Part shown: positions 14,390 to 31,940 of the stretch, piece after piece
How positions within the stretch are numbered: position 1 is the stretch's first letter
Layout of the letters: the number at the start of each line of letters is the position of its first letter
Assembly: GCF_000315625.1 (NCBI RefSeq)
Contig: NW_005434658.1
Coordinates: 711,139 to 775,138 of the forward strand
Length of the DNA: 64,000 bases
Reading direction: 5' to 3'
Source: Guillardia theta CCMP2712
Taxonomy: Eukaryota > Protista > Cryptophyta
Position numbers and translations under genes: made by a program
Notes under the pieces: model-generated
Seen by the model: the letters and a program-made list of their open reading frames with translations, nothing else
The model's database searches: none
What the model was told of the DNA's origin: nothing

Positions 14390-14830
14390 GATCGGATCCG
14401 ATCATCGGGGCACTGCAGTGACTTGTGAAAGTTCAACGGTTAGCCGCTGAGCTGCATTGACGAGTGTTTCATGACGGAGAGTCCGAGGTCTCGACGAGTC
14501 GTGTGGGAGTGCTGACGCTCCCAGCCTGCCTCTGCCATCTGAGACTATTCATGACGAACAGTCTGAGTAGTACTGTCCGGGCCGCCGGACCGTGGGTGGC
14601 GGCCCCGGCCAGTCGGTGGGCAACTTGAGATAATCCTCAGGGGCCTTCAAAGTTAGTTACTAAGAATGTGCCCCCCCCCCCCCCCCTCCCCCAACCCCCT
14701 GGCTCCGAGCCGCGTACTCAGTGACTCCGGGCTCAGTAGCCGCTAGTCGGACCGGCTACTAGCGGCCGGCGGCCGGGCCCGGTCTCCGAGACCGTACGGT
14801 TCAACGGTTGCCTGAAGTTCGGCATTACCT
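14390..14830. promoter_or_regulatory. Intergenic CCGG/GGCC-rich island 2
   Basis: CGGATCCGATCATCGG, ACTCAGTGACT at 14716, GCGGCCGGCGGCCGGGCCCGG, CCGTACGG. Confidence 0.5.
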
Positions 14831-14901
14831 GAGGCAGGCCTGCAAAGTCGGCAATCTCGGGGAGATGAGGCCGTAGGAGCATGAGAAACTTGACGGGGTG
14901 G

Positions 14902-15077
<176 letters not shown>

Positions 15078-15140
15078 TGTGTCTTGACATACCCTCACTC
15101 CATCCGAACTGAAGGCTGCAGCTTGTCTGAGTTGGTTGAG

Positions 15141-16092
15141 ATGTCAGCGAGCCATGTGAAGCAGGAGGGCACGCGAGGTAGCACGCACGATGAAGATCTC
15201 GTTCCGAACGTGGAAGGAGGAGGAGGGGGAGCAACGGGCAGATCGCACTTAGCGGCGGAGAAGGAAGCGAGAAAGAGAACTGGGCAGGCGAAGAAGAAAC
15301 GGTACGATCTCCCTATTCGCCTCATCAAACAACTCTTGTCGGATCCTGCACTGCATGTTCCAGCTCCATCCAAGGTTCGCCGCTCTCGGCAGGCTGTCCT
15401 CCTCCTTATCTGCGTGAGACAGGAGGGATATCGTAACAAGGCTCTGTACGGACTTGACACCTGCGAGACAAGGTGAGGGCTCGATCGTTGCTGAGTTCGG
15501 TGATCGGCCGTCCTGGCAGTATCCTGGTCAATCCTACGGTCAACGGAGCGTGTAAGGTTGTGTTTGAGTTTGTATGTTCGCGCTCCAAGCTCAAGAGAAG
15601 CTTCTGGCTGGACGTCTCCTGCAAGGTGAGCGCAGTGCCTTGCGCTCGGACTTGATGAAGGTCTCGCAGATCACGATAGGGGGCGACATCATGATGAAGG
15701 TTGCAGTGGACGAGGAGGCAGGACGGGAGGAGGAGCCCAAGTTCGATGAGGTAGGAGCATGTAAACCCTTGTGGCCTTCTCGCTCATGCCATGTCGAGGT
15801 GTGGAGGGAAGAAAAGAGCTCGCTGATCGACCTCCTCCTCCTCTTCTCCCCTGCCTTCAAGTGCATCGCCGTCCACAGGAGCAGGCGACGGGGAGTCAAG
15901 CCCACCAAGGAGGAGGAGCATGAGATTATCTATGGTGATCCGTACGTGATGGAGAAGACGCCCAACGGCATATCGTTTGCGCTCTCGCCCGATACGTTCT
16001 GTGAGGTCAACCACTACATGGAAAGGCACGTCTTTCACTTCATCAACCACTCCTGCCAGGAAGCTTGCGCAGCCCTTGTAAGTTTGCCGCCG

Positions 16093-16124
<32 letters not shown>

Positions 16125-18277
16125 ACTGGAGCTTGAGCTGCTGGTGCTGTAGTTGCTGCTGGTGCAGCTACTTTTCCTGTCTTCTCTTTGCTTTTTCCAT
16201 TCTGCCATTGTGCTGCACGTGTCCTGACGTCTCCCGTTGCTCGCAGAAGGCCAAGGACGGAGGTAGCAGACCTCTGCTGCTCACCATGGGGAGAAACATC
16301 AACTCGCTCTCTCTCGGCCTCATGTCAGCCGGCGGGTTTGCTCGGGTTGTTTCTATCACGCACTGCCCACTGGCTCACAGAGACCTGGAAATCAACCTGA
16401 AGGAGATCCCCGGCTTGATCTCGGGAGACGACAACCTCCTCGTCCGGCAGAAGAACAAGATCGGAGAAGCGATCATGCAGGTGCGAGGCCCCCGGATCGA
16501 TGGAGGGGAAGGAGGAAAGAGATGTGGGAGCTGGGGGGACGGAAGGGAGTGGGAGAATTGGGGGAAGAGAGCGAGCGTGAAGGAGGGAGGGAGGAAGAGG
16601 GTGGAACAGGGAGGGAGGGGACAGAGGGGAGGGGTTGGGAGAAAGAGAGTTGGAGAGGAAGAGGAAGTGTTCCGTTGCCTGTTTGCCTGTTTGCTCTTTC
16701 TGTGATTTTGCTCGAACAGCTTCCGGACGATTGTCCGATCGTTGTGGCAGTGACTGCGGGACGAGGAGGCTTGCATGCAAACACGATCGTTGCACTGAAG
16801 AAGAAGAAGAATGTCTGCACTGTCGTGTATGACGCCTGTAACAACCCAACACTGGTGAGCAAGCCGATGATGTGATTGGAGTCTGTGTTGCTGTCTTACT
16901 GTCTTGTTCTCACCTCCATCTCTTTACCAGACAAGAGATCTCTGCGATCTTGTGGACGACTTTGACTACTGTATTGCCAACTTTCGATCTTTCGACTTCT
17001 TCCCGCAAACAGAATTTATGGCGTCTGTAGCCAAGTTGGACCGAGCAAGGTGGGAAAAGGGGAAGGGAAGAGAAGGGAAGGGGAGGGAAGGGGAGGGAAG
17101 GGGAGGGGAGGGGAGGGGAGGGGAGGGATGGGAAGTAACTCGCAAGAGCAGGAAGACTCTCATCTTGCCCATCGGGCCCTCAGGCATCGGCAAATCGAGT
17201 CTGGCAAGAAAATGCTTGGGCAGCTTCCCCGTGCAGACTATGAGACACATCGAGCGAGATGCTCTGTTTGCGCAAGAGAGAGCACGGTGATTTTCTCTTC
17301 CTCCTTATATCATGTCTCTCCTCTCCTCCTCATTCCCTCTCCATCCTGTTTCCTGTCTCTCCTCCCCCCTCTCCTCCTCCATCCCTCCTGTTTCTCTCCT
17401 CTCCTCTCCTCCTCTCTCCCTCTCCCTCCTGTTTCCTCTCTCTCAACTGTCCTTTTTCTCTCCTCTCCCCCCTTAGATCACATCTGATGCGTTTTGATAC
17501 CAGTGAGACGGAAAGTGCACTAGCAAAGAAAGATCATCTGCTGAGCATCTCTGCTATCTCCTCGCCCATTCCTCCATCCCTTCTCTTCACACTCACTCAG
17601 CATCTCCATCTCGATTTTCTCCCTCCCTCCATCTAGTCTCACTCTCTCATTCAGTCCGGATGCCACGCTGGCAAAGGCGAAGCAAGCGACGCACGAGGCG
17701 ATGCTGGCGCAGCTGAGAGAGGAGACGCGCCTCCTTCTCCTCGACAGCACCAACGGAGACCCGCAGGCTCGCAGGCTCTACGTCCTCACGTCGGGGGCCG
17801 AGCGAGTCGTCGCCGTCAACATGCAGATGCGGCATGAAGGAAGAGCTTCCTTTCTGCTTGCCGAGGATGACGAGGACGTGCAGGAGGAGAGGTCCCTTCC
17901 AGCCTGATGGAGGCGACGATGAGAAGGACAAAGGTGGAGTTGGAGGTAAGACAGGGAAGAGGGGGAGGGAGGCTGACCGGTGGGCAGGAGGGCAGGCATC
18001 CGTCGTTCCCGCTGGAGGAGGAGAAACAGAGGGCCAAGCACGCAAAGATACTCGAGGGGCTGCAGTACGCGGAGGCGTCGGAGATTGAGGAGGTGAGAGT
18101 GAGAGGTGACGGGGGGAGGAGATCACAAGCGCGTTCAGGTTCCTATCGCAATCGTCGACGTCGAGCAAGAGGCGAGTGAGGAGGAGAAGAATGAGCTCGT
18201 GCTAATGTGGGGTGGGGCAGGAGGACGCAGAGGAAGTGACCTTCGCCGTCTTCCTGAAAGTTTTCTCCTTCCTGTGA
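15141..18277 (+). CDS. TrmA/RlmD-family RNA (uracil-5)-methyltransferase-like domain fused to a P-loop (AAA_33/polynucleotide kinase-like) domain
   Basis: GYRNK, FALSPDTFCEVN, VVYDACNNPTL|TRDL, FDFFPQT, then LILPIGPSGIGKSSLAR, IERD, LLLDSTN..QAR and GRHPSF. Exons are joined by GT/GC-AG introns. Start and last exons are approximate. Confidence 0.8.
17477..17624 (+). repeat. 148-bp dispersed intronic element, copy 1
   Basis: 144/148 identical to 31754-31901. Lies inside intron 17287-17654. Confidence 0.95.
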
Positions 18278-18329
18278 GGACCAAAGGACCAGTCTCATCA
18301 TGTCGTTTCTATCATCACCCTTCTCAAGA

Positions 18330-20825
18330 TTATACGTAAACCCACGACCCGTCCACCCTCCTCTCCTTGAAGAGACAGACACCCCACCTGTACATCTCGT
18401 CAACAAGTGTTCTCGTCCTTCCCACCCTCCCTCCCTCCCCCGTCTCCCTCCCACCTCCTCCTTCCCTCCCTTATATGGTTCTGCTTCCTCTGCTTCGACC
18501 CATTTTCTGCTTCTTCCATCCCCAACCACGCCACCACCACCACCGATGTTACTTCCTCCTCTCTTTCCTCCCCCCTCCTCCTCTCCAACCTTGACTTGTC
18601 GTTAGCTGTGTAGCACCATGGCCTTGCCGAATAATCCGTCGTGCAGGCAGTCTTGCATGTGTCTCCAGGTAACGACGTCCCTCCTACTTCAACATCATCC
18701 TCCCATCATCGGGCGCGCCTGTCACGCACCTGCCACCTCCACCTTGCATGACGCAAACGTCGTCTGCTCCCTGTCGGTGAAGCACCACAGGTTGCCGGGC
18801 ACGTGCGTCCCGTTGGGCGTCGGGCCGTCGACACAACTGCGTCAAGTTTGAGCGAGGAGTGAGGAGAGTCCAACGGACGGCAACCTTCCGTAAATCTTGC
18901 CCTCGTACAGGAAGGGAAAGCTGCAGGATGTCGCGTTGTCGTCCTCCTCGCCTTCCTCCACCTGTTCACAGCCCCGTCAGACATGGCAGGAGTCAGCCTC
19001 CTCCCCCTCCTCACCTCAATGTACTGTTCGCAGTTTCCCCATCTCGTCTGCTCCTTGTCGGCATAGCACCATGGAGCATCTCGGCCCTGTCACCCATCAG
19101 CCCCCCCGCCATGCCCCTACGACTTCCCAGCTCCTCTCACCTGAGTTGTGCACCTCGTGAAGATCTGATCGTTGAAGTAGAAGGGAAAGTGGCAGTATCG
19201 ATCCGTGGGCAGAGTCGACCCGCCAAACACCCTGATCTCCCCCAGAGGCAAAGCCATCACTCCCTACCCCAAAATCGTCACTTGCATCGGCTCAACTTCT
19301 CGTCCCTCCTCTACCTCTTTCCCAGGCAAGCCCTTGTGACCGTCTCGTCCAGGTCTGCCCCTGTACCCCACCTGCCTCATGGGTCAGCAAGGGACCTTTG
19401 CCTCCCTCCCCTTCAACTCACCTCTCCTCGCGCTCCGATGTTGCCCAGCGGTCCGGGGGAACCAGGATACCCGCGTGGACCAGGAGGCCCTGAGATCCCG
19501 GGAGCACCATAGGCTGGAGCCGGTTTACCGGGAGGCCCTTGGAAGCCTGCACTGGCGTCATCCTCCTTTACCAACCTGCCCGTCCTGACACACCGTCTGG
19601 CCCAGGTCGTCCAGGTTTTCCCTCTCGTCCTGGCATTCCTGGAGTTCCGTCCTTGCCGTTGTATCCGGGAGTTCCATCCCTATAAGCAGCTCTCAGCCTC
19701 CCCTCCTCACTCCTCCTCCTCTGTCAACCTGCCCATGGCGCCGATGGGACCTGGCATCCCATCCTGGCCATCTCGCCCTGCCGCCCCCTGCCTCCCTGGC
19801 AGCCCTGGAGGTCCTGGAGGGCCAGTCTCTCCCTGGCACAACAGGACGTGAGCGCTCACTGAGATCATCGGCCTCATCCCAGCTCACCTTGGCACCCGGA
19901 GGCCCCTTAGGCCCTGGCTCGTAGCTCGGGATCCCATCTACTCCATCCAACCCGGGGCTTCCTGGAACTCCCGGCGGACCCTCTGCTTTCACCGCGTCAG
20001 CCCTCCGTGCAAAGAGCAAGTGCGGGGACAGGACCTGGGCCAGCAACCTTGGAAGGGATCCCTGGCTTGCCGTCTATCCCTGGAGCTCCTGGCTCTCCTA
20101 CTCCTAGATCAGCAGGCGACCAGGCAAGCATCGAAACAGACTTACCTGGCGGACCCTCCGGGCCAACTGGTCCTGACTCGCCGGGGTACCCAGGAGGGCC
20201 GATGAAGCCAGGAGAACCTCTCGGCTTCTTGGCCTCAGAAACCTGCAAGGACAAGGAACCGTCAGGTCTACTCCACGTCCTGACTCAGCTTTACCTCGTC
20301 TTCCAGGTGATATTGCCTCTTTGCTGCTCGGTTGATCAGAACCTGGAGCTCGCCGAGTAGGCGATAGATCCTTTGGGAGTAGCTCAGAACTTCCTCTCCA
20401 CGAGGGTTTGGTCCAGGGCATTCGGGACCACCAGGCCCTCCACAGTGCGGCCCTGGCGCTGGAGGAGGAGGTGGTGGTGGCAAAGGTGCCCCCACAGGTC
20501 CGTTATGGATTGAGTCGATGATGGACTGCAGACGATTCATCTTGTTTTGCATGAAGTTGTACTCTCTAACATCCTGATCCCCCTCTGAGTACGCAAACTG
20601 TCTGCCCATCCCGTGGTCGATCATGTCGTTCGGCACATCGTTTACATGCGGCACCGTGTAATCGTTGAGCAACTCCTCCACCGCATGTGCGCTTCCATCT
20701 TCTCTTCTCCCAGAGGACCGGAGGAACAAAATGGCACATGACACGGAGGCAAGCAAGACAAGCATCAAGGCTGCTGTTCTCTTCCTCCCTCCCATCCTCC
20801 TTCCCCTGCCCCCGCCTGCCTCCAT
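18330..20825 (-). CDS. Signal-anchored collagen-like (Gly-X-Y) protein with three C-terminal fibronectin type II-like modules
   Basis: N-terminal RKR plus hydrophobic anchor, short coiled coils, poly-Pro, interrupted GPP/GEP/GKP repeats over several exons, then CHFPFYFNDQIFTRCTTQGRDAPWCYADKEQTRWGNC, CSFPFLYEGKIYGSCVDG..LWCFT..C and CKTACTTDYSARPWCYTANDKSRWGVC. Stop TAA at 18330-18332. Confidence 0.88.
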
Positions 20826-30438: not shown

Positions 30439-31940
30439 ATGGCGAAGGGGTTTTGGCACAGAGCAATGAAAACCTGGACACTCCTGTCTGCGTTGGTCCT
30501 TATTGTTGGGTGCATTGCGCTTTCAACACGGGGAATCGACATGAGAACGAAAGAGGTTCTTGTGATTGTTGATTACGATCTGGTTTCTGCTGAGTTTGAA
30601 GCTTGCAGGACAAGCTTAGCCTTCTTCAGTCTTCGCGCATTGATCAAATGCTCATGGATTTGTCAGCAGTGACCAAAGAAAGCAGCGACGATGTGAAATC
30701 GATGAAGGAGAAGATAAAGCAATTGAGGAAACAAGCAGAGGACGAGAGATCCAAAGCGGCAAATTGGGACAAGACTGTACGAAAGCAGGAGACTGGCCTG
30801 AAGAAGAAACTGGAGAAAGCCAAAGATGATGAGTTGCTTTCGTCACAAGATGAAGACTTGGCTCAAGAAGATGTTGAAAGAGCCTCAAAGATGAGGAAGC
30901 GAGCGCAGAGGCTCAAGGATGAAAGTGATGCCGCGCGTCGCAAATTTGTTGCACAAGAACATCCGATCGAGATGGCTACGAAGCTGGCAGGACATGATCA
31001 TAAGGAGTATAGAAGGGCTGAGTTGGCTGTGGCTAGCGAGGTAGCAAAACTCTCGGAACACCCGAATGACTCTGCGCTGCGAAAGAAAGTTGACCATCTT
31101 GTGAGCATTTCAAAGAAAGCGAAGGCAAGAATGGAAGATGATGGCAAACTCCTGAAGAAGCTGGAGAGCAAAACAGCTGACGCTGAGCTTGGAGGGCAAC
31201 GAGGTTATGCACACTTGAGAGCGAAGAGTGTGGAGATTGCCAAGCAGGCCGAATCTGTCGCTGAAAATGCTGTCTCTTTGGCAAAGCGAGGAGAAAAACT
31301 CAAAGCTGCAGCAAACAAGATCACTGAGAAGGTTGTGAAGGATCTCAAGGTCCCCGATGCTCTCCACCTTCGTGCGCAAAAAGAGCGAAAGGCGTATAAA
31401 GCGCATATGCTTTTGATCCGTCGTTTGCAAGCCAAAATTGACAAGTACAGCAATGACATGGACAAAAAGAAGAGTCACACTGCAGAGGAGTCTTCAGATG
31501 AGAAATATGATGAAGAGCGAACTGAGTTGGAGAAGATCGCAAACGGATCAAGCGACTCGAAGAAGAGGAAATCTCAAGGTCACTCTTCGGAAGTGGAGCA
31601 GCTGGTTGCGGCAAAAGACAGCTATGACCAACTGGAGGAGTTGGAATTGAAGAAGGAGAAGGCTAAACTGCGGATGGAAAGGGAGCACTCATCATCGCAA
31701 AGCTCGCATTCTTCTTTCTCAAGGTCAGTAATTTGTGAATATCTCCTTTTGACATCACATCTGATGCGTTTTGATACCAGTGAGACGGAAAGTGCACTAG
31801 CAAAGAAAGATCATCTGCTGAACAAAACTGCTATCTCCTCGCCCATTCCTCCATCCCTTCTCTTCACACTCACTCAGCATCTCCATCTCGATTTTCTCCC
31901 TGCCAACAAAAGTCCATGGGATACACAACGGACAATCTAA
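30439..31940 (+). CDS. Signal-anchored K/E/A-rich coiled-coil protein of unknown function
   Basis: Exon 1 encodes the hydrophobic anchor WTLLSALVLIVGCIALS. A short intron leads to a long charged helical exon. Predicted last intron 31724-31912. Confidence 0.75.
31754..31901 (+). repeat. 148-bp dispersed intronic element, copy 2
   Basis: 144/148 identical to 17477-17624. Confidence 0.95.

Follow-up and report, generated by a model that had tools for sequence, protein, structure and literature searches.

A single gene of Guillardia theta joins a methyltransferase-fold domain, whose chemistry appears to have been lost, to a P-loop domain of the PNK type, and the exons of both parts are transcribed as one mRNA. 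Across protists, the fusion forms a conserved family. With slightly better than even confidence, we read the protein as an RNA-directed kinase, acting probably on tRNA or rRNA, whose predicted activity would be guided to its predicted substrate by the pseudo-methyltransferase. The window analysed here is a stretch of 64,000 nucleotides (contig NW_005434658.1, positions 711,139 to 775,138 of the forward strand), and all positions below refer to it.

Gene structure and transcripts

The gene occupies positions 15141-18277 of the forward strand and consists of 14 exons (Table 1). Together they form a CDS of 1815 nt, a single open frame of 604 codons that encodes 604 aa, from an ATG at 15141 to a TGA at 18275-18277. 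The gene is present in one copy in Guillardia. Start and stop lie where the preliminary description placed them, and all motifs quoted in it lie on this strand and in one spliced frame. That description also let the methyltransferase fold run on in frame into the kinase. The two are indeed fused in the spliced frame, but the GA-rich stretch taken as their linker is a spliced intron.

A profile of 13 full-length relatives was compared with the window as 2195 six-frame pieces. It matched at the fusion locus and nowhere else; the matches followed the succession of the exons, covered profile positions 57-539, and had E values of 6e-26 to 5e-4 for the individual pieces. Matches confined to one locus and collinear with its exons indicate that the observation is not a product of chance.

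Table 1. Exons, selected introns, and motifs of the fusion gene (window positions; E values refer to the family profile).
Feature	Positions	Strand	Content
Exon 1	15141-15374	+	Start ATG; N-terminal basic cluster KRTGQAKKKR; basic clusters at equivalent location in relatives; conserved LL..P.LHVPAPS helix; junction 15374|15423 with exon 2 present in RNA contigs, phases and GT..AG ends checked
Exon 2	15423-15472	+	GYRNK motif (YRNK 15429-15440), start of TrmA-type central domain
Exon 3	15520-15625	+	Central domain; profile positions 57-94, E 5e-4; RNA junctions
Exon 4	15670-15750	+	Central domain; RNA junctions and phase
Exon 5	15799-16077	+	KPTK, TPNG, SPDTFCEVN; F-x-E-x-N (15997-16011) in place of uracil-binding F-x-Q-x-N, aligned with RlmCD AFYQVN; profile positions 113-204, 87.9 bits, E 6e-26
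Exon 6	16247-16480	+	Former SAM motif I, GRNIN (16289-16303); motif II region THCP (HCP 16361-16369), then D 16382 and N 16394; aligned with RlmCD DAYSGIGT and VELIP; profile positions 209-259, E 2e-9
Exon 7	16720-16854	+	Motif IV TAGRGG (16753-16770), not DPPRxG; Cys equivalent to motif VI nucleophile at 16837-16839 (YDACNNP); profile positions 293-334, E 1e-8
Exon 8	16931-17049	+	Motif VIII FDFFPQT (16994-17011); Ala (17021-17023) at general-base Glu position of m5U methyltransferases, aligned with RlmCD FPQTHHVQT; end of methyltransferase-like domain; profile positions 334-371
Intron 8	17050-17151	+	GA-rich, 102 nt, in frame, stop-free, GT..AG; exactly at domain border
Exon 9	17152-17286	+	Start of kinase domain; P-loop (Walker A) GPSGIGKS (17174-17197); ERD (17252-17260); profile positions 369-416, E 1e-11
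Intron 9	17287-17654	+	368 nt, CT-rich; contains 151-bp repeated element (17477-17627); joint 17286|17655
Exon 10	17655-17839	+	DSTNGDPQAR (17743-17772); profile positions 419-490, E 1e-12; non-canonical GA donor at 17840, present in 3 runs
Exon 11	17884-17945	+	First lid Arg (MRRT)
Exon 12	17988-18092	+	Lid GRHPSFP (17991-18011; RHPSFP 17994-18011) and EEKQRAKHAKILEGLQY; in 47 relatives R, H, P invariant and F, K nearly invariant; profile positions 490-539, E 2e-9
Exon 13	18139-18171	+	GC donor at 18172
Exon 14	18221-18277	+	Stop TGA 18275-18277; transcript extends to about 18385

A spliced contig of 1493 nt, identical in three studies, begins in exon 1 and ends 29 nt into exon 10. This length equals 325+1139+29 only if 17050-17151 is spliced out, and intron 8 is therefore removed in RNA. 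Spliced RNA contigs link the methyltransferase-like exons in frame with the Walker A exon and continue into the exon that carries DSTN. The locus also yields an abundant 5'-truncated transcript, unspliced from at least 17516 within intron 9, and the unspliced contig at 17516-17683 has a depth 3-12x above that of the full-length transcript. In the short form, an ATG in frame first occurs at 17701 in exon 10, and the P-loop cannot be encoded by this form. Most transcripts over the 3' exons thus lack the P-loop exon, which counts against an RNA-directed kinase. Trans-splicing at a loose contig end at 17502 was considered and rejected, the source being a second copy of the 151-bp element at 31754-31904. 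Another loose end, at 17544, had the same appearance, and the letters behind it have no counterpart in the window.

The short transcript and run X22, whose raw reads cover only the 3' part, are what would be expected of two separate genes, or of an assembly or read-through artefact joining a degenerate methyltransferase gene to an independent downstream gene. Such an arrangement is nevertheless scarcely credible. Of the separate transcripts considered in the preliminary description, an abundant 3' form does exist, but its start, after the P-loop exon, falls within the kinase domain rather than on the border between the two domains, and it hence cuts a domain instead of the fusion. The spliced contig spans that border unbranched. 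Moreover, both halves share one ORF in orthologues from independent transcriptomes and intronless contigs, and X22 is a 3'-biased run of which about 6% was read.

The N-terminal module: an m5U methyltransferase fold with probably lost chemistry

Compared with the PDB, the family profile retrieved RlmCD (E 2e-15), RumA (1e-9), and TrmA (1e-3). The Euglena orthologue P0007 served as a proxy for the Guillardia protein, and its AF2 model (pLDDT 84, pTM 0.80) returned m5U RNA methyltransferases as all 13 best Foldseek matches, with E values from 5e-18 to 5e-14. As modelled, the N-terminal part has the TrmA/RumA/RlmCD fold, composed of a central domain and a class I Rossmann domain.

Standard family models respond faintly to this part. 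PF05958 gave no match at the fusion locus at E<=10, either in a six-frame whole-genome search or exon by exon, and it matched elsewhere in the genome. Among ten orthologues it matched three, over its C-terminal 70 positions only, with 19.6-23.7 bits (cut-off 23, two just above). TIGR00479 scored orthologues at 29-53 bits against a cut-off of 183.55. The absence of PF05958 and PF13671 matches at the locus is due to the distance of the Pfam models at the level of single exons.

The positions that serve methyl transfer have diverged in the 13- and 47-sequence alignments. SAM motif I, DAYSGIGT in RlmCD, reads sGRDins in the family and MGRNINS in Guillardia. The acid of motif II, the Glu of RlmCD VELIP, is replaced by Q, T, N, or P before HCP. 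Motif IV changes from DPPRKG in RlmCD to taGRkG in the family, or more generally (t/n)(a/g)GRxG, and to TAGRGG in Guillardia, Arg and Gly alone being kept. In motif VIII, THHVQT of the solved RlmCD chain corresponds to TkYvas, so that A or M stands at the general-base position; Guillardia has Ala there (FPQTEFMAS). The whole family has lost SAM motifs I, II, and IV as well as the general base. On sequence grounds, methylation by this half is therefore very unlikely, and the RNA modification ascribed to it in the preliminary description is doubtful.

Other positions are under strong constraint. The motif VI nucleophile Cys (SCN; C313) is invariant in 47 relatives, together with G229-R230-D231, C254-P255, D260, N264, and R304. 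GRD and HCP are new invariant motifs of the family; Guillardia carries Asn in place of the Asp of GRD that is invariant in the 47 relatives. In the same set, Y63, R64, N65, and K66 of YRNK and the Q-to-E change in F-x-E-x-N are nearly invariant. That the old active site retains the Cys and has gained many invariant polar residues suggests that this module is more than a passive binder, which counts, as does the Guillardia Asn, against the reading of the fusion as a kinase guided by a pseudo-methyltransferase.

The C-terminal module: a predicted PNK-type P-loop kinase

The C-terminal part appears intact as a PNK-type kinase, and its activity is predicted from the motifs that it keeps. Across 47 relatives, G, G, and K of the Walker A motif GxxGxGK(S/T) are invariant, as is the R-D pair (ERD) at the expected spacing from the P-loop. 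In PNK-type enzymes the general base is an Asp shortly after strand 2, as with Asp35 of T4 Pnk in R-D-D. The HMMER alignment sets the family R-D one turn from the CthPnkp Asp, and their equivalence is one of motif position alone. DSTNGDPQAR aligns with DATNVQESAR of CthPnkp, and D, N, and R of DxTN..R are invariant in the 47 relatives. The lid follows the pattern R-x3-R-x2-H-P-x-F-P, in which the second Arg (R480) is invariant and the first (R476) nearly so in the 13-sequence alignment. The Guillardia lid, MRRT ... GRHPSFP, is split over exons 11 and 12 with a spacer longer than that of the family.

By sequence profile, the best among the long PDB matches of the kinase part is the CthPnkp kinase (E 3e-4, 112 positions), and T4 Pnk follows at 0.01; single Guillardia exons gave no matches to PDB sequences. 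An exhaustive structural search with the kinase model placed Trl1 KIN at Z 14.9, PSTK at 14.8, and CthPnkp at 14.2, with PNK enzymes at 12.6-14.9, Kti12 at 12.4, and UMP and adenylate kinases up to 12.5. Foldseek with the same model returned the PFKFB2/3 sugar-kinase domains first (E 1.7e-7) and gluconate kinase (4e-6). The gently declining structural scores and the leading place of PFKFB in Foldseek count against an RNA-directed kinase. The proposal of the preliminary description, a TrmA/RlmD fold that continues in frame into a P-loop kinase of the PNK/AAA_33/Trl1 type, is supported.

No Guillardia exon taken singly reached a Pfam cut-off, another point against an RNA-directed kinase. For AAA_33 (PF13671, cut-off 27 bits), the P-loop exon alone scored 18.3 bits, and the rest of the exon-by-exon Pfam scan was noise; a six-frame whole-genome search with this model matched elsewhere and not at the fusion locus. 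Orthologues scored 17.7-31.7 bits, two of ten above the cut-off. A stand-alone relative of the kinase in giant viruses (hhalign 99.6%) exceeded the cut-offs of both AAA_33 (31.4 bits) and KTI12 (28.5 bits against 22) and nearly reached that of tRNA_lig_kinase. PHROG scans returned only generic families named 'polynucleotide kinase', 'kinase', or 'ATPase'.

Distribution and annotation of the family

The fusion family comprises at least 69 protein clusters at E<=1e-10, mostly of 550-650 aa. It occurs in diatoms (Detonula), other cryptophytes (Rhodomonas, a fragment), Euglena, and four diplonemids; relatives of 550-720 aa come from Euglena, the four diplonemids, and metagenomes. In the ESM Atlas, no fused cluster was found among the large clusters, the search by features was blank, and the search by shape gave bacterial RlmD clusters only.

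Automatic JGI annotation sees both halves, as 'uracil-C5-methylase.../predicted kinase'. The architecture, which had been described as unrecognised, is thus uncharacterised rather than unseen. A literature search, with many journals outside its coverage, found no paper on the family or its architecture.

Proposed function and alternative readings

The gene may encode a two-module enzyme with a probably nuclear location, for which the N-terminal K/R clusters of most members in the 13-sequence alignment provide support. Module 1 (about residues 60-400) has the TrmA/RumA/RlmCD architecture, with a central domain, predicted to bind RNA, and a Rossmann domain containing a base-flipping pocket, and it has very probably lost the ability to bind S-adenosylmethionine and complete methyl transfer. 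Its putative role is substrate recognition, in which it would dock a structured RNA; the likeliest ligand is a hairpin loop, either similar to the tRNA T-arm or from rRNA. Module 2, at about residues 400-604, would act as a phosphotransferase of the PNK/Trl1/PSTK type, moving the NTP gamma-phosphate to a hydroxyl group on the docked RNA, with the 5'-OH end as the likeliest target. We infer RNA binding, kinase activity, and the identity of the hydroxyl, and healing of RNA 5'-OH ends is what fold and motifs would suggest. Guillardia has RtcB, and no Trl1 ligase/kinase domain was detectable in it, although the ligase model was silent in control genomes too. No known pathway is therefore in obvious need of this kinase, which counts against the proposed function; it may conceivably stand in for a missing Trl1 kinase.

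The invariance of C313, GRD, C254-P255, D260, N264, and R304, with the nearly invariant Q-to-E change in F-x-E-x-N, represents a constraint unusual for a mere docking surface. It could signify that the former methyltransferase pocket now serves as a new active site, in which the retained nucleophilic Cys and the new invariant Arg, Asp, Cys, and His act on a flipped-out pyrimidine, and that the kinase phosphorylates or prepares the product. This possibility, likened to the phage 5-hydroxymethyluracil DNA kinases that prime thymidine hypermodification, gains some appeal from the occurrence of the family in Euglenozoa, which make the hydroxymethyluracil-derived base J. We nonetheless consider it unlikely: no cofactor site can be named, the PHROG matches were generic, Guillardia itself lacks the invariant Asp, and base J is not known from cryptophytes and diatoms. 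It is likewise rather unlikely that a remodelled TrmA pocket forms a new catalytic site that, with the kinase, installs or processes a pyrimidine of RNA or DNA in phosphorylated or hypermodified form. If this were true, diatoms, cryptophytes, and euglenozoans would have in common a so far undescribed eukaryotic route of nucleic-acid modification, whose kinase has a relative in giant viruses.

Other readings concern the P-loop domain. The KTI12 score of the viral stand-alone relative, the positions of Kti12 and PSTK among the structural matches, and a weak KTI12 match for relative P0018 would fit a KTI12-like, tRNA-activated NTPase switch without phosphotransfer, the protein being a tRNA chaperone or regulator. 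We give this little credence, given that the R-D pair, with the presumed general base, and DxTN..R, typical of true PNK-type kinases, are kept; no fusion-family member reached the KTI12 Pfam cut-off. The Foldseek ranking could instead indicate a small-molecule kinase, similar to 6-phosphofructo-2-kinase or gluconokinase, with the degenerate methyltransferase domain as a scaffold or regulatory part only. Such a function is quite improbable. PFK-2 and gluconokinase chains are absent from the 60 best sequence-profile matches, where CthPnkp and T4 Pnk are present, 6PF2K gave no Pfam match, RNA kinases come first in the exhaustive structural search, and the fold of the fusion partner is an RNA-binding one.

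Should the kinase act on RNA, it would represent a new eukaryotic RNA kinase family beside Clp1, Grc3/Nol9, Trl1, and PSTK, equipped with a built-in substrate reader of m5U methyltransferase origin. The fusion would then show clearly how a pseudoenzyme can be co-opted to target another activity. With its new, strictly conserved residues, the presumably dead active site may even host unknown chemistry on a flipped-out base. The family occurs in ecologically dominant algae (diatoms and cryptophytes) as well as in euglenozoans, and it offers a defined set of residues for mutagenesis and orthologues in tractable organisms.

Comparison with known systems

With TrmA, RumA (RlmD), RlmCD, and Trm2/TRMT2 (PF05958, TIGR00479), the family shares the central domain and the Rossmann fold. 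It keeps YRNK, F-x-x-x-N, the Arg of motif IV, the Cys of motif VI, and the FPxT of motif VIII. In contrast to these enzymes, it lacks the Gly-rich SAM loop, the motif II acid, the Asp-Pro-Pro of motif IV, the general-base Glu, a TRAM domain, and an Fe-S cluster; it has Glu in place of the uracil-binding Gln and the new invariant GRD and HCP. Solved m5U methyltransferases end no more than about 10 residues past FPxT, as the preliminary description had stated, whereas a kinase of 200 residues follows here.

The kinase has its P-loop, DxTN..R, and a lid rich in Arg in common with T4 Pnk, Clostridium thermocellum Pnkp, and the fungal and plant Trl1 kinase, and its Arg-Asp pair corresponds by motif position to the one that follows strand 2 in those enzymes. 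In these proteins too, the kinase is joined to a second nucleic-acid-handling module. That partner is a phosphatase, cyclic phosphodiesterase, or ligase in the polynucleotide 5'-kinases and a disabled methyltransferase fold in the fusion family, whose predicted kinase bears its own signature, R-x3-R-x2-HP(S/A)FP...EQR.KH..IL.GI.(Y/W)P. PSTK, the O-phosphoseryl-tRNA(Sec) kinase, and KTI12 likewise combine a P-loop domain of the same subgroup with a tRNA-binding module. Unlike the TrmA-type module of the fusion family, theirs is C-terminal and unrelated to TrmA.

Catalytically inactive RNA binders of the methyltransferase fold are pseudoenzymes that retain the fold for substrate binding. The fusion family resembles them in having lost the SAM motifs while keeping the fold and RNA-facing features. 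It differs from them in retaining the nucleophile Cys, in its new invariant polar residues, and in the kinase to which it is covalently joined.

Gene structure and transcription of the fusion

The fusion gene of G. theta was reconstructed from contigs of three RNA-derived runs (three studies) and raw RNA reads, placed on window 15085-19000. All motifs quoted in the preliminary description were found on the + strand of window 15141-18277, although not within one open reading frame: they are spread over 14 exons, with short introns of 42-368 nt between them. One spliced RNA contig, 1493 nt long except in one run (1494 nt), matches the window with zero mismatches. The joint across 17050-17151 was masked by the repeat filter in contig placement and was deduced from length arithmetic, as the sum 325+1139+29 nt accounts for the contig only when these 102 nt are spliced out. 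This GA-rich stretch, previously taken for an in-frame linker, is thus an intron, and it resembled coding sequence because it is in frame and stop-free. With these junctions, and phases computed per exon, the frame is open from the ATG at 15141 to the TGA at 18275-18277 (1815 nt, 604 codons). The non-canonical GA and GC donors are both required for the frame that enters the conserved lid motif.

Transcript features of the fusion gene (window positions)
Feature	Position	Strand	Evidence
Spliced contig blocks, first half	15085-15374, 15423-15472, 15520-15625, 15670-15750, 15799-16077	+	RNA contig
Spliced contig blocks, second half	16247-16480, 16720-16854, 16931-17049, 17152-17286, 17655-17683	+	RNA contig
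Junctions on second RNA contig	17839/17884, 17945/17988, 18092/18139, 18171/18221	+	RNA contig
Donor GA, GA..AG intron of 44 nt	17840	+	contigs of three runs and raw reads
Donor GC, GC..AG intron of 49 nt	18172	+	contigs of three runs and raw reads

The RNA contig starts within a long (GAGCAG)n hexamer array (14825-15106) directly upstream of the start codon, which places the array in the 5' UTR. An ORF of Arg-Ser repeats begins at an upstream ATG (14881). The 3' end of the gene overlaps that of a collagen/FN2 gene on the minus strand by about 150 nt (18229-18385); one RNA contig spans both genes, and joints with CT..AC ends occur from 18385 on.

A 5'-truncated transcript

An unspliced contig (17516-17683) and a downstream contig are 3-12 times as deep as the full-length contig across the three runs (1007 and 1032 versus 312; 133 and 179 versus 11; 30 and 86 versus 9.7), unitig depth being a poor proxy for expression. 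No branch leaves the full-length contig at the exon 9 donor, so the abundant RNA lacks exon 9 and must start within intron 9, at about 17312-17516. The first in-frame ATG of this transcript (17312-18385, +) is at 17701, downstream of the P-loop and ERD, so it cannot encode an active kinase and could encode only a kinase fragment without the P-loop. A 50-codon ORF opening at ATG 17485 and another ATG, out of frame, at 17660 lie upstream of that in-frame ATG. Separate transcripts for the two halves had been named as evidence against a fusion. A shorter 3' RNA does exist, but it divides the kinase domain and leaves the two domains unseparated.

Intron 9 contains a 151-bp element (17477-17627) that is 97% identical to 31754-31904, 14 kb away in an unrelated gene. 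The copy at 31.7 kb is partly used as an exon (splice 31723/31781, seen as a loose end) and explains at least the loose end at 17502. The copy at 17.5 kb adjoins the start region of the abundant transcript, and the element may carry a promoter or splice sites.

Conservation of the fusion

A HMMER search of the full library, run with two adjacent exons as query (window 15670-16077), revealed no close copy of the Guillardia protein in the databases. Its hits included a fragment from Rhodomonas salina at 58% identity and a group of proteins of 549-719 aa with the same motif order, from YRNK to HPSFP. The source names of a few members, which define the taxonomic distribution, include Euglena gracilis and the diplonemids Artemidia, Namystynia, Diplonema, and Hemistasia. 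In a word search from one metagenomic member, 69 clusters passed E<=1e-10; most are full-length, and one includes a protein from Detonula confervacea, a diatom. Several members derive from assembled transcriptomes or from contigs lacking introns, which independently supports the production of both halves as one protein.

A profile of 13 full-length relatives matches the 64-kb window at the fusion locus only, in eight collinear pieces (profile positions 57-539), and pieces 334-371 (exon 8) and 369-416 (exon 9) flank the domain junction. Across the whole Guillardia genome (87 Mb, 669 contigs), the family is single-copy; the one further, weaker match (E 4.9e-8) falls on contig 59, at the canonical m5U methyltransferase locus, and ordinary m5U methyltransferase genes lie on contigs 59 and 49. 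Two separate genes are now an unlikely explanation, because one spliced contig runs across the border between the halves and relatives encode one protein. The in-frame fusion first proposed is borne out by the spliced contig and by single-protein relatives in other lineages, and we hold with high confidence that it is real, expressed, and conserved.

A remodelled methyltransferase fold

Compared with solved m5U RNA methyltransferases, the family profile matches RlmCD (E 2e-15 over 250 positions), RumA (1e-9), a Pyrococcus enzyme (8e-7), and TrmA (1e-3). An AlphaFold2 model of the Euglena orthologue (pLDDT 84.3, pTM 0.80) agrees with the TrmA/RlmD fold assigned earlier, its best 13 Foldseek matches all being m5U RNA methyltransferases (E 5e-18 to 5e-14). 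The fold therefore holds, but membership in the enzyme family fails, as scores are far under curated cut-offs.

Residue-level alignment locates the changes. In place of the SAM loop DAYSGIGT, the family has sGRD(I/S)N and Guillardia has GRNIN; the Guillardia Asn (window 16289-16303; base confirmed by RNA contigs) contrasts with an Asp invariant in 47 of 47 aligned relatives. The motif II acid gives way to an invariant C-P with a nearly invariant His before it, motif IV is cut back from DPPRxG to GRxG, the uracil-binding motif reads F-x-E-x-N instead of F-x-Q-x-N, and the general-base Glu after FPxT becomes Ala or Met. The nucleophile Cys is invariant in 47 sequences. As the changes are common to all lineages and the replacing residues are invariant, the site reflects old, selected remodelling rather than decay.

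The kinase and its possible role

All PNK-type elements are invariant in the 47-sequence alignment: the P-loop, an R-D pair that by motif position is the putative general-base pair, D-x-T-N..R, and the lid R-x3-R-x2-HPxFP. Only two enzymes in the PDB sequence set matched specifically and at length: the kinase of Clostridium thermocellum Pnkp (CthPnkp; E 3e-4 over 112 positions) and T4 Pnk (E 0.01). Structural alignment of the kinase domain model (pLDDT 89.7) to 48,161 representative chains retrieved the Trl1 ligase-kinase (Z 14.9), PSTK (14.8), the uncharacterised kinase 2rhm (14.5), CthPnkp (14.2), fungal RNA kinases (13.8-13.9), PFKFB (13.6), T4 Pnk (12.6), and Kti12 (12.4). These motifs, with CthPnkp, T4 Pnk, and Trl1 among the matches, sustain the original assignment of a PNK-like domain.

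Foldseek orders the matches differently and places PFKFB and gluconate kinase on top, so structure alone is compatible with a small-molecule kinase. The same subfamily includes a 178-aa kinase that stands alone (hhalign 99.6%, E 8e-24). It is encoded on a giant-virus-like, AT-rich contig of 56.8 kb (IMG/VR; L020:2986-3522), together with Rpb5 and patatin. It carries LPVGPPGSGKT, SRD, DTTNSNEGIR, and RDHPTF, and scores above the AAA_33 and KTI12 cut-offs and just short of tRNA_lig_kinase, which links this subfamily with tRNA and RNA kinases. Guillardia has two loci for RtcB-type RNA ligase (contigs C6:311840-313545 and C98:119215-120950), and a six-frame search of its genome detected no Trl1-type ligase or kinase domain.

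We consider the protein somewhat more probably than otherwise an RNA-directed kinase with a disabled TrmA-like docking module. This module would dock a structured RNA loop, and the kinase would phosphorylate a hydroxyl of the docked RNA, most likely a 5'-OH. Most members carry N-terminal K/R clusters, which suggests a nuclear protein. Less probably, the remodelled pocket may still be catalytic and coupled to the kinase, or the protein may act as a KTI12-like NTPase switch or as a small-molecule kinase.

Comparison with known systems

The preliminary description did not recognise this architecture. The literature searched contained no report of a pseudo-m5U-methyltransferase joined to a PNK-type kinase, nor was the fusion found among large ESM Atlas clusters; the JGI automatic name of members, 'uracil-C5-methylase (TrmA/RlmC/RlmD family)/predicted kinase', nevertheless lists both halves. 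Neither fold is new. The usual fusion partners of end-healing kinases are phosphatases, phosphodiesterases, or ligases, whereas the partner here is a pseudo-m5U-methyltransferase. PSTK and KTI12 also join a P-loop domain to a tRNA-binding domain, but that domain is unrelated to the methyltransferase-type partner of the fusion protein.
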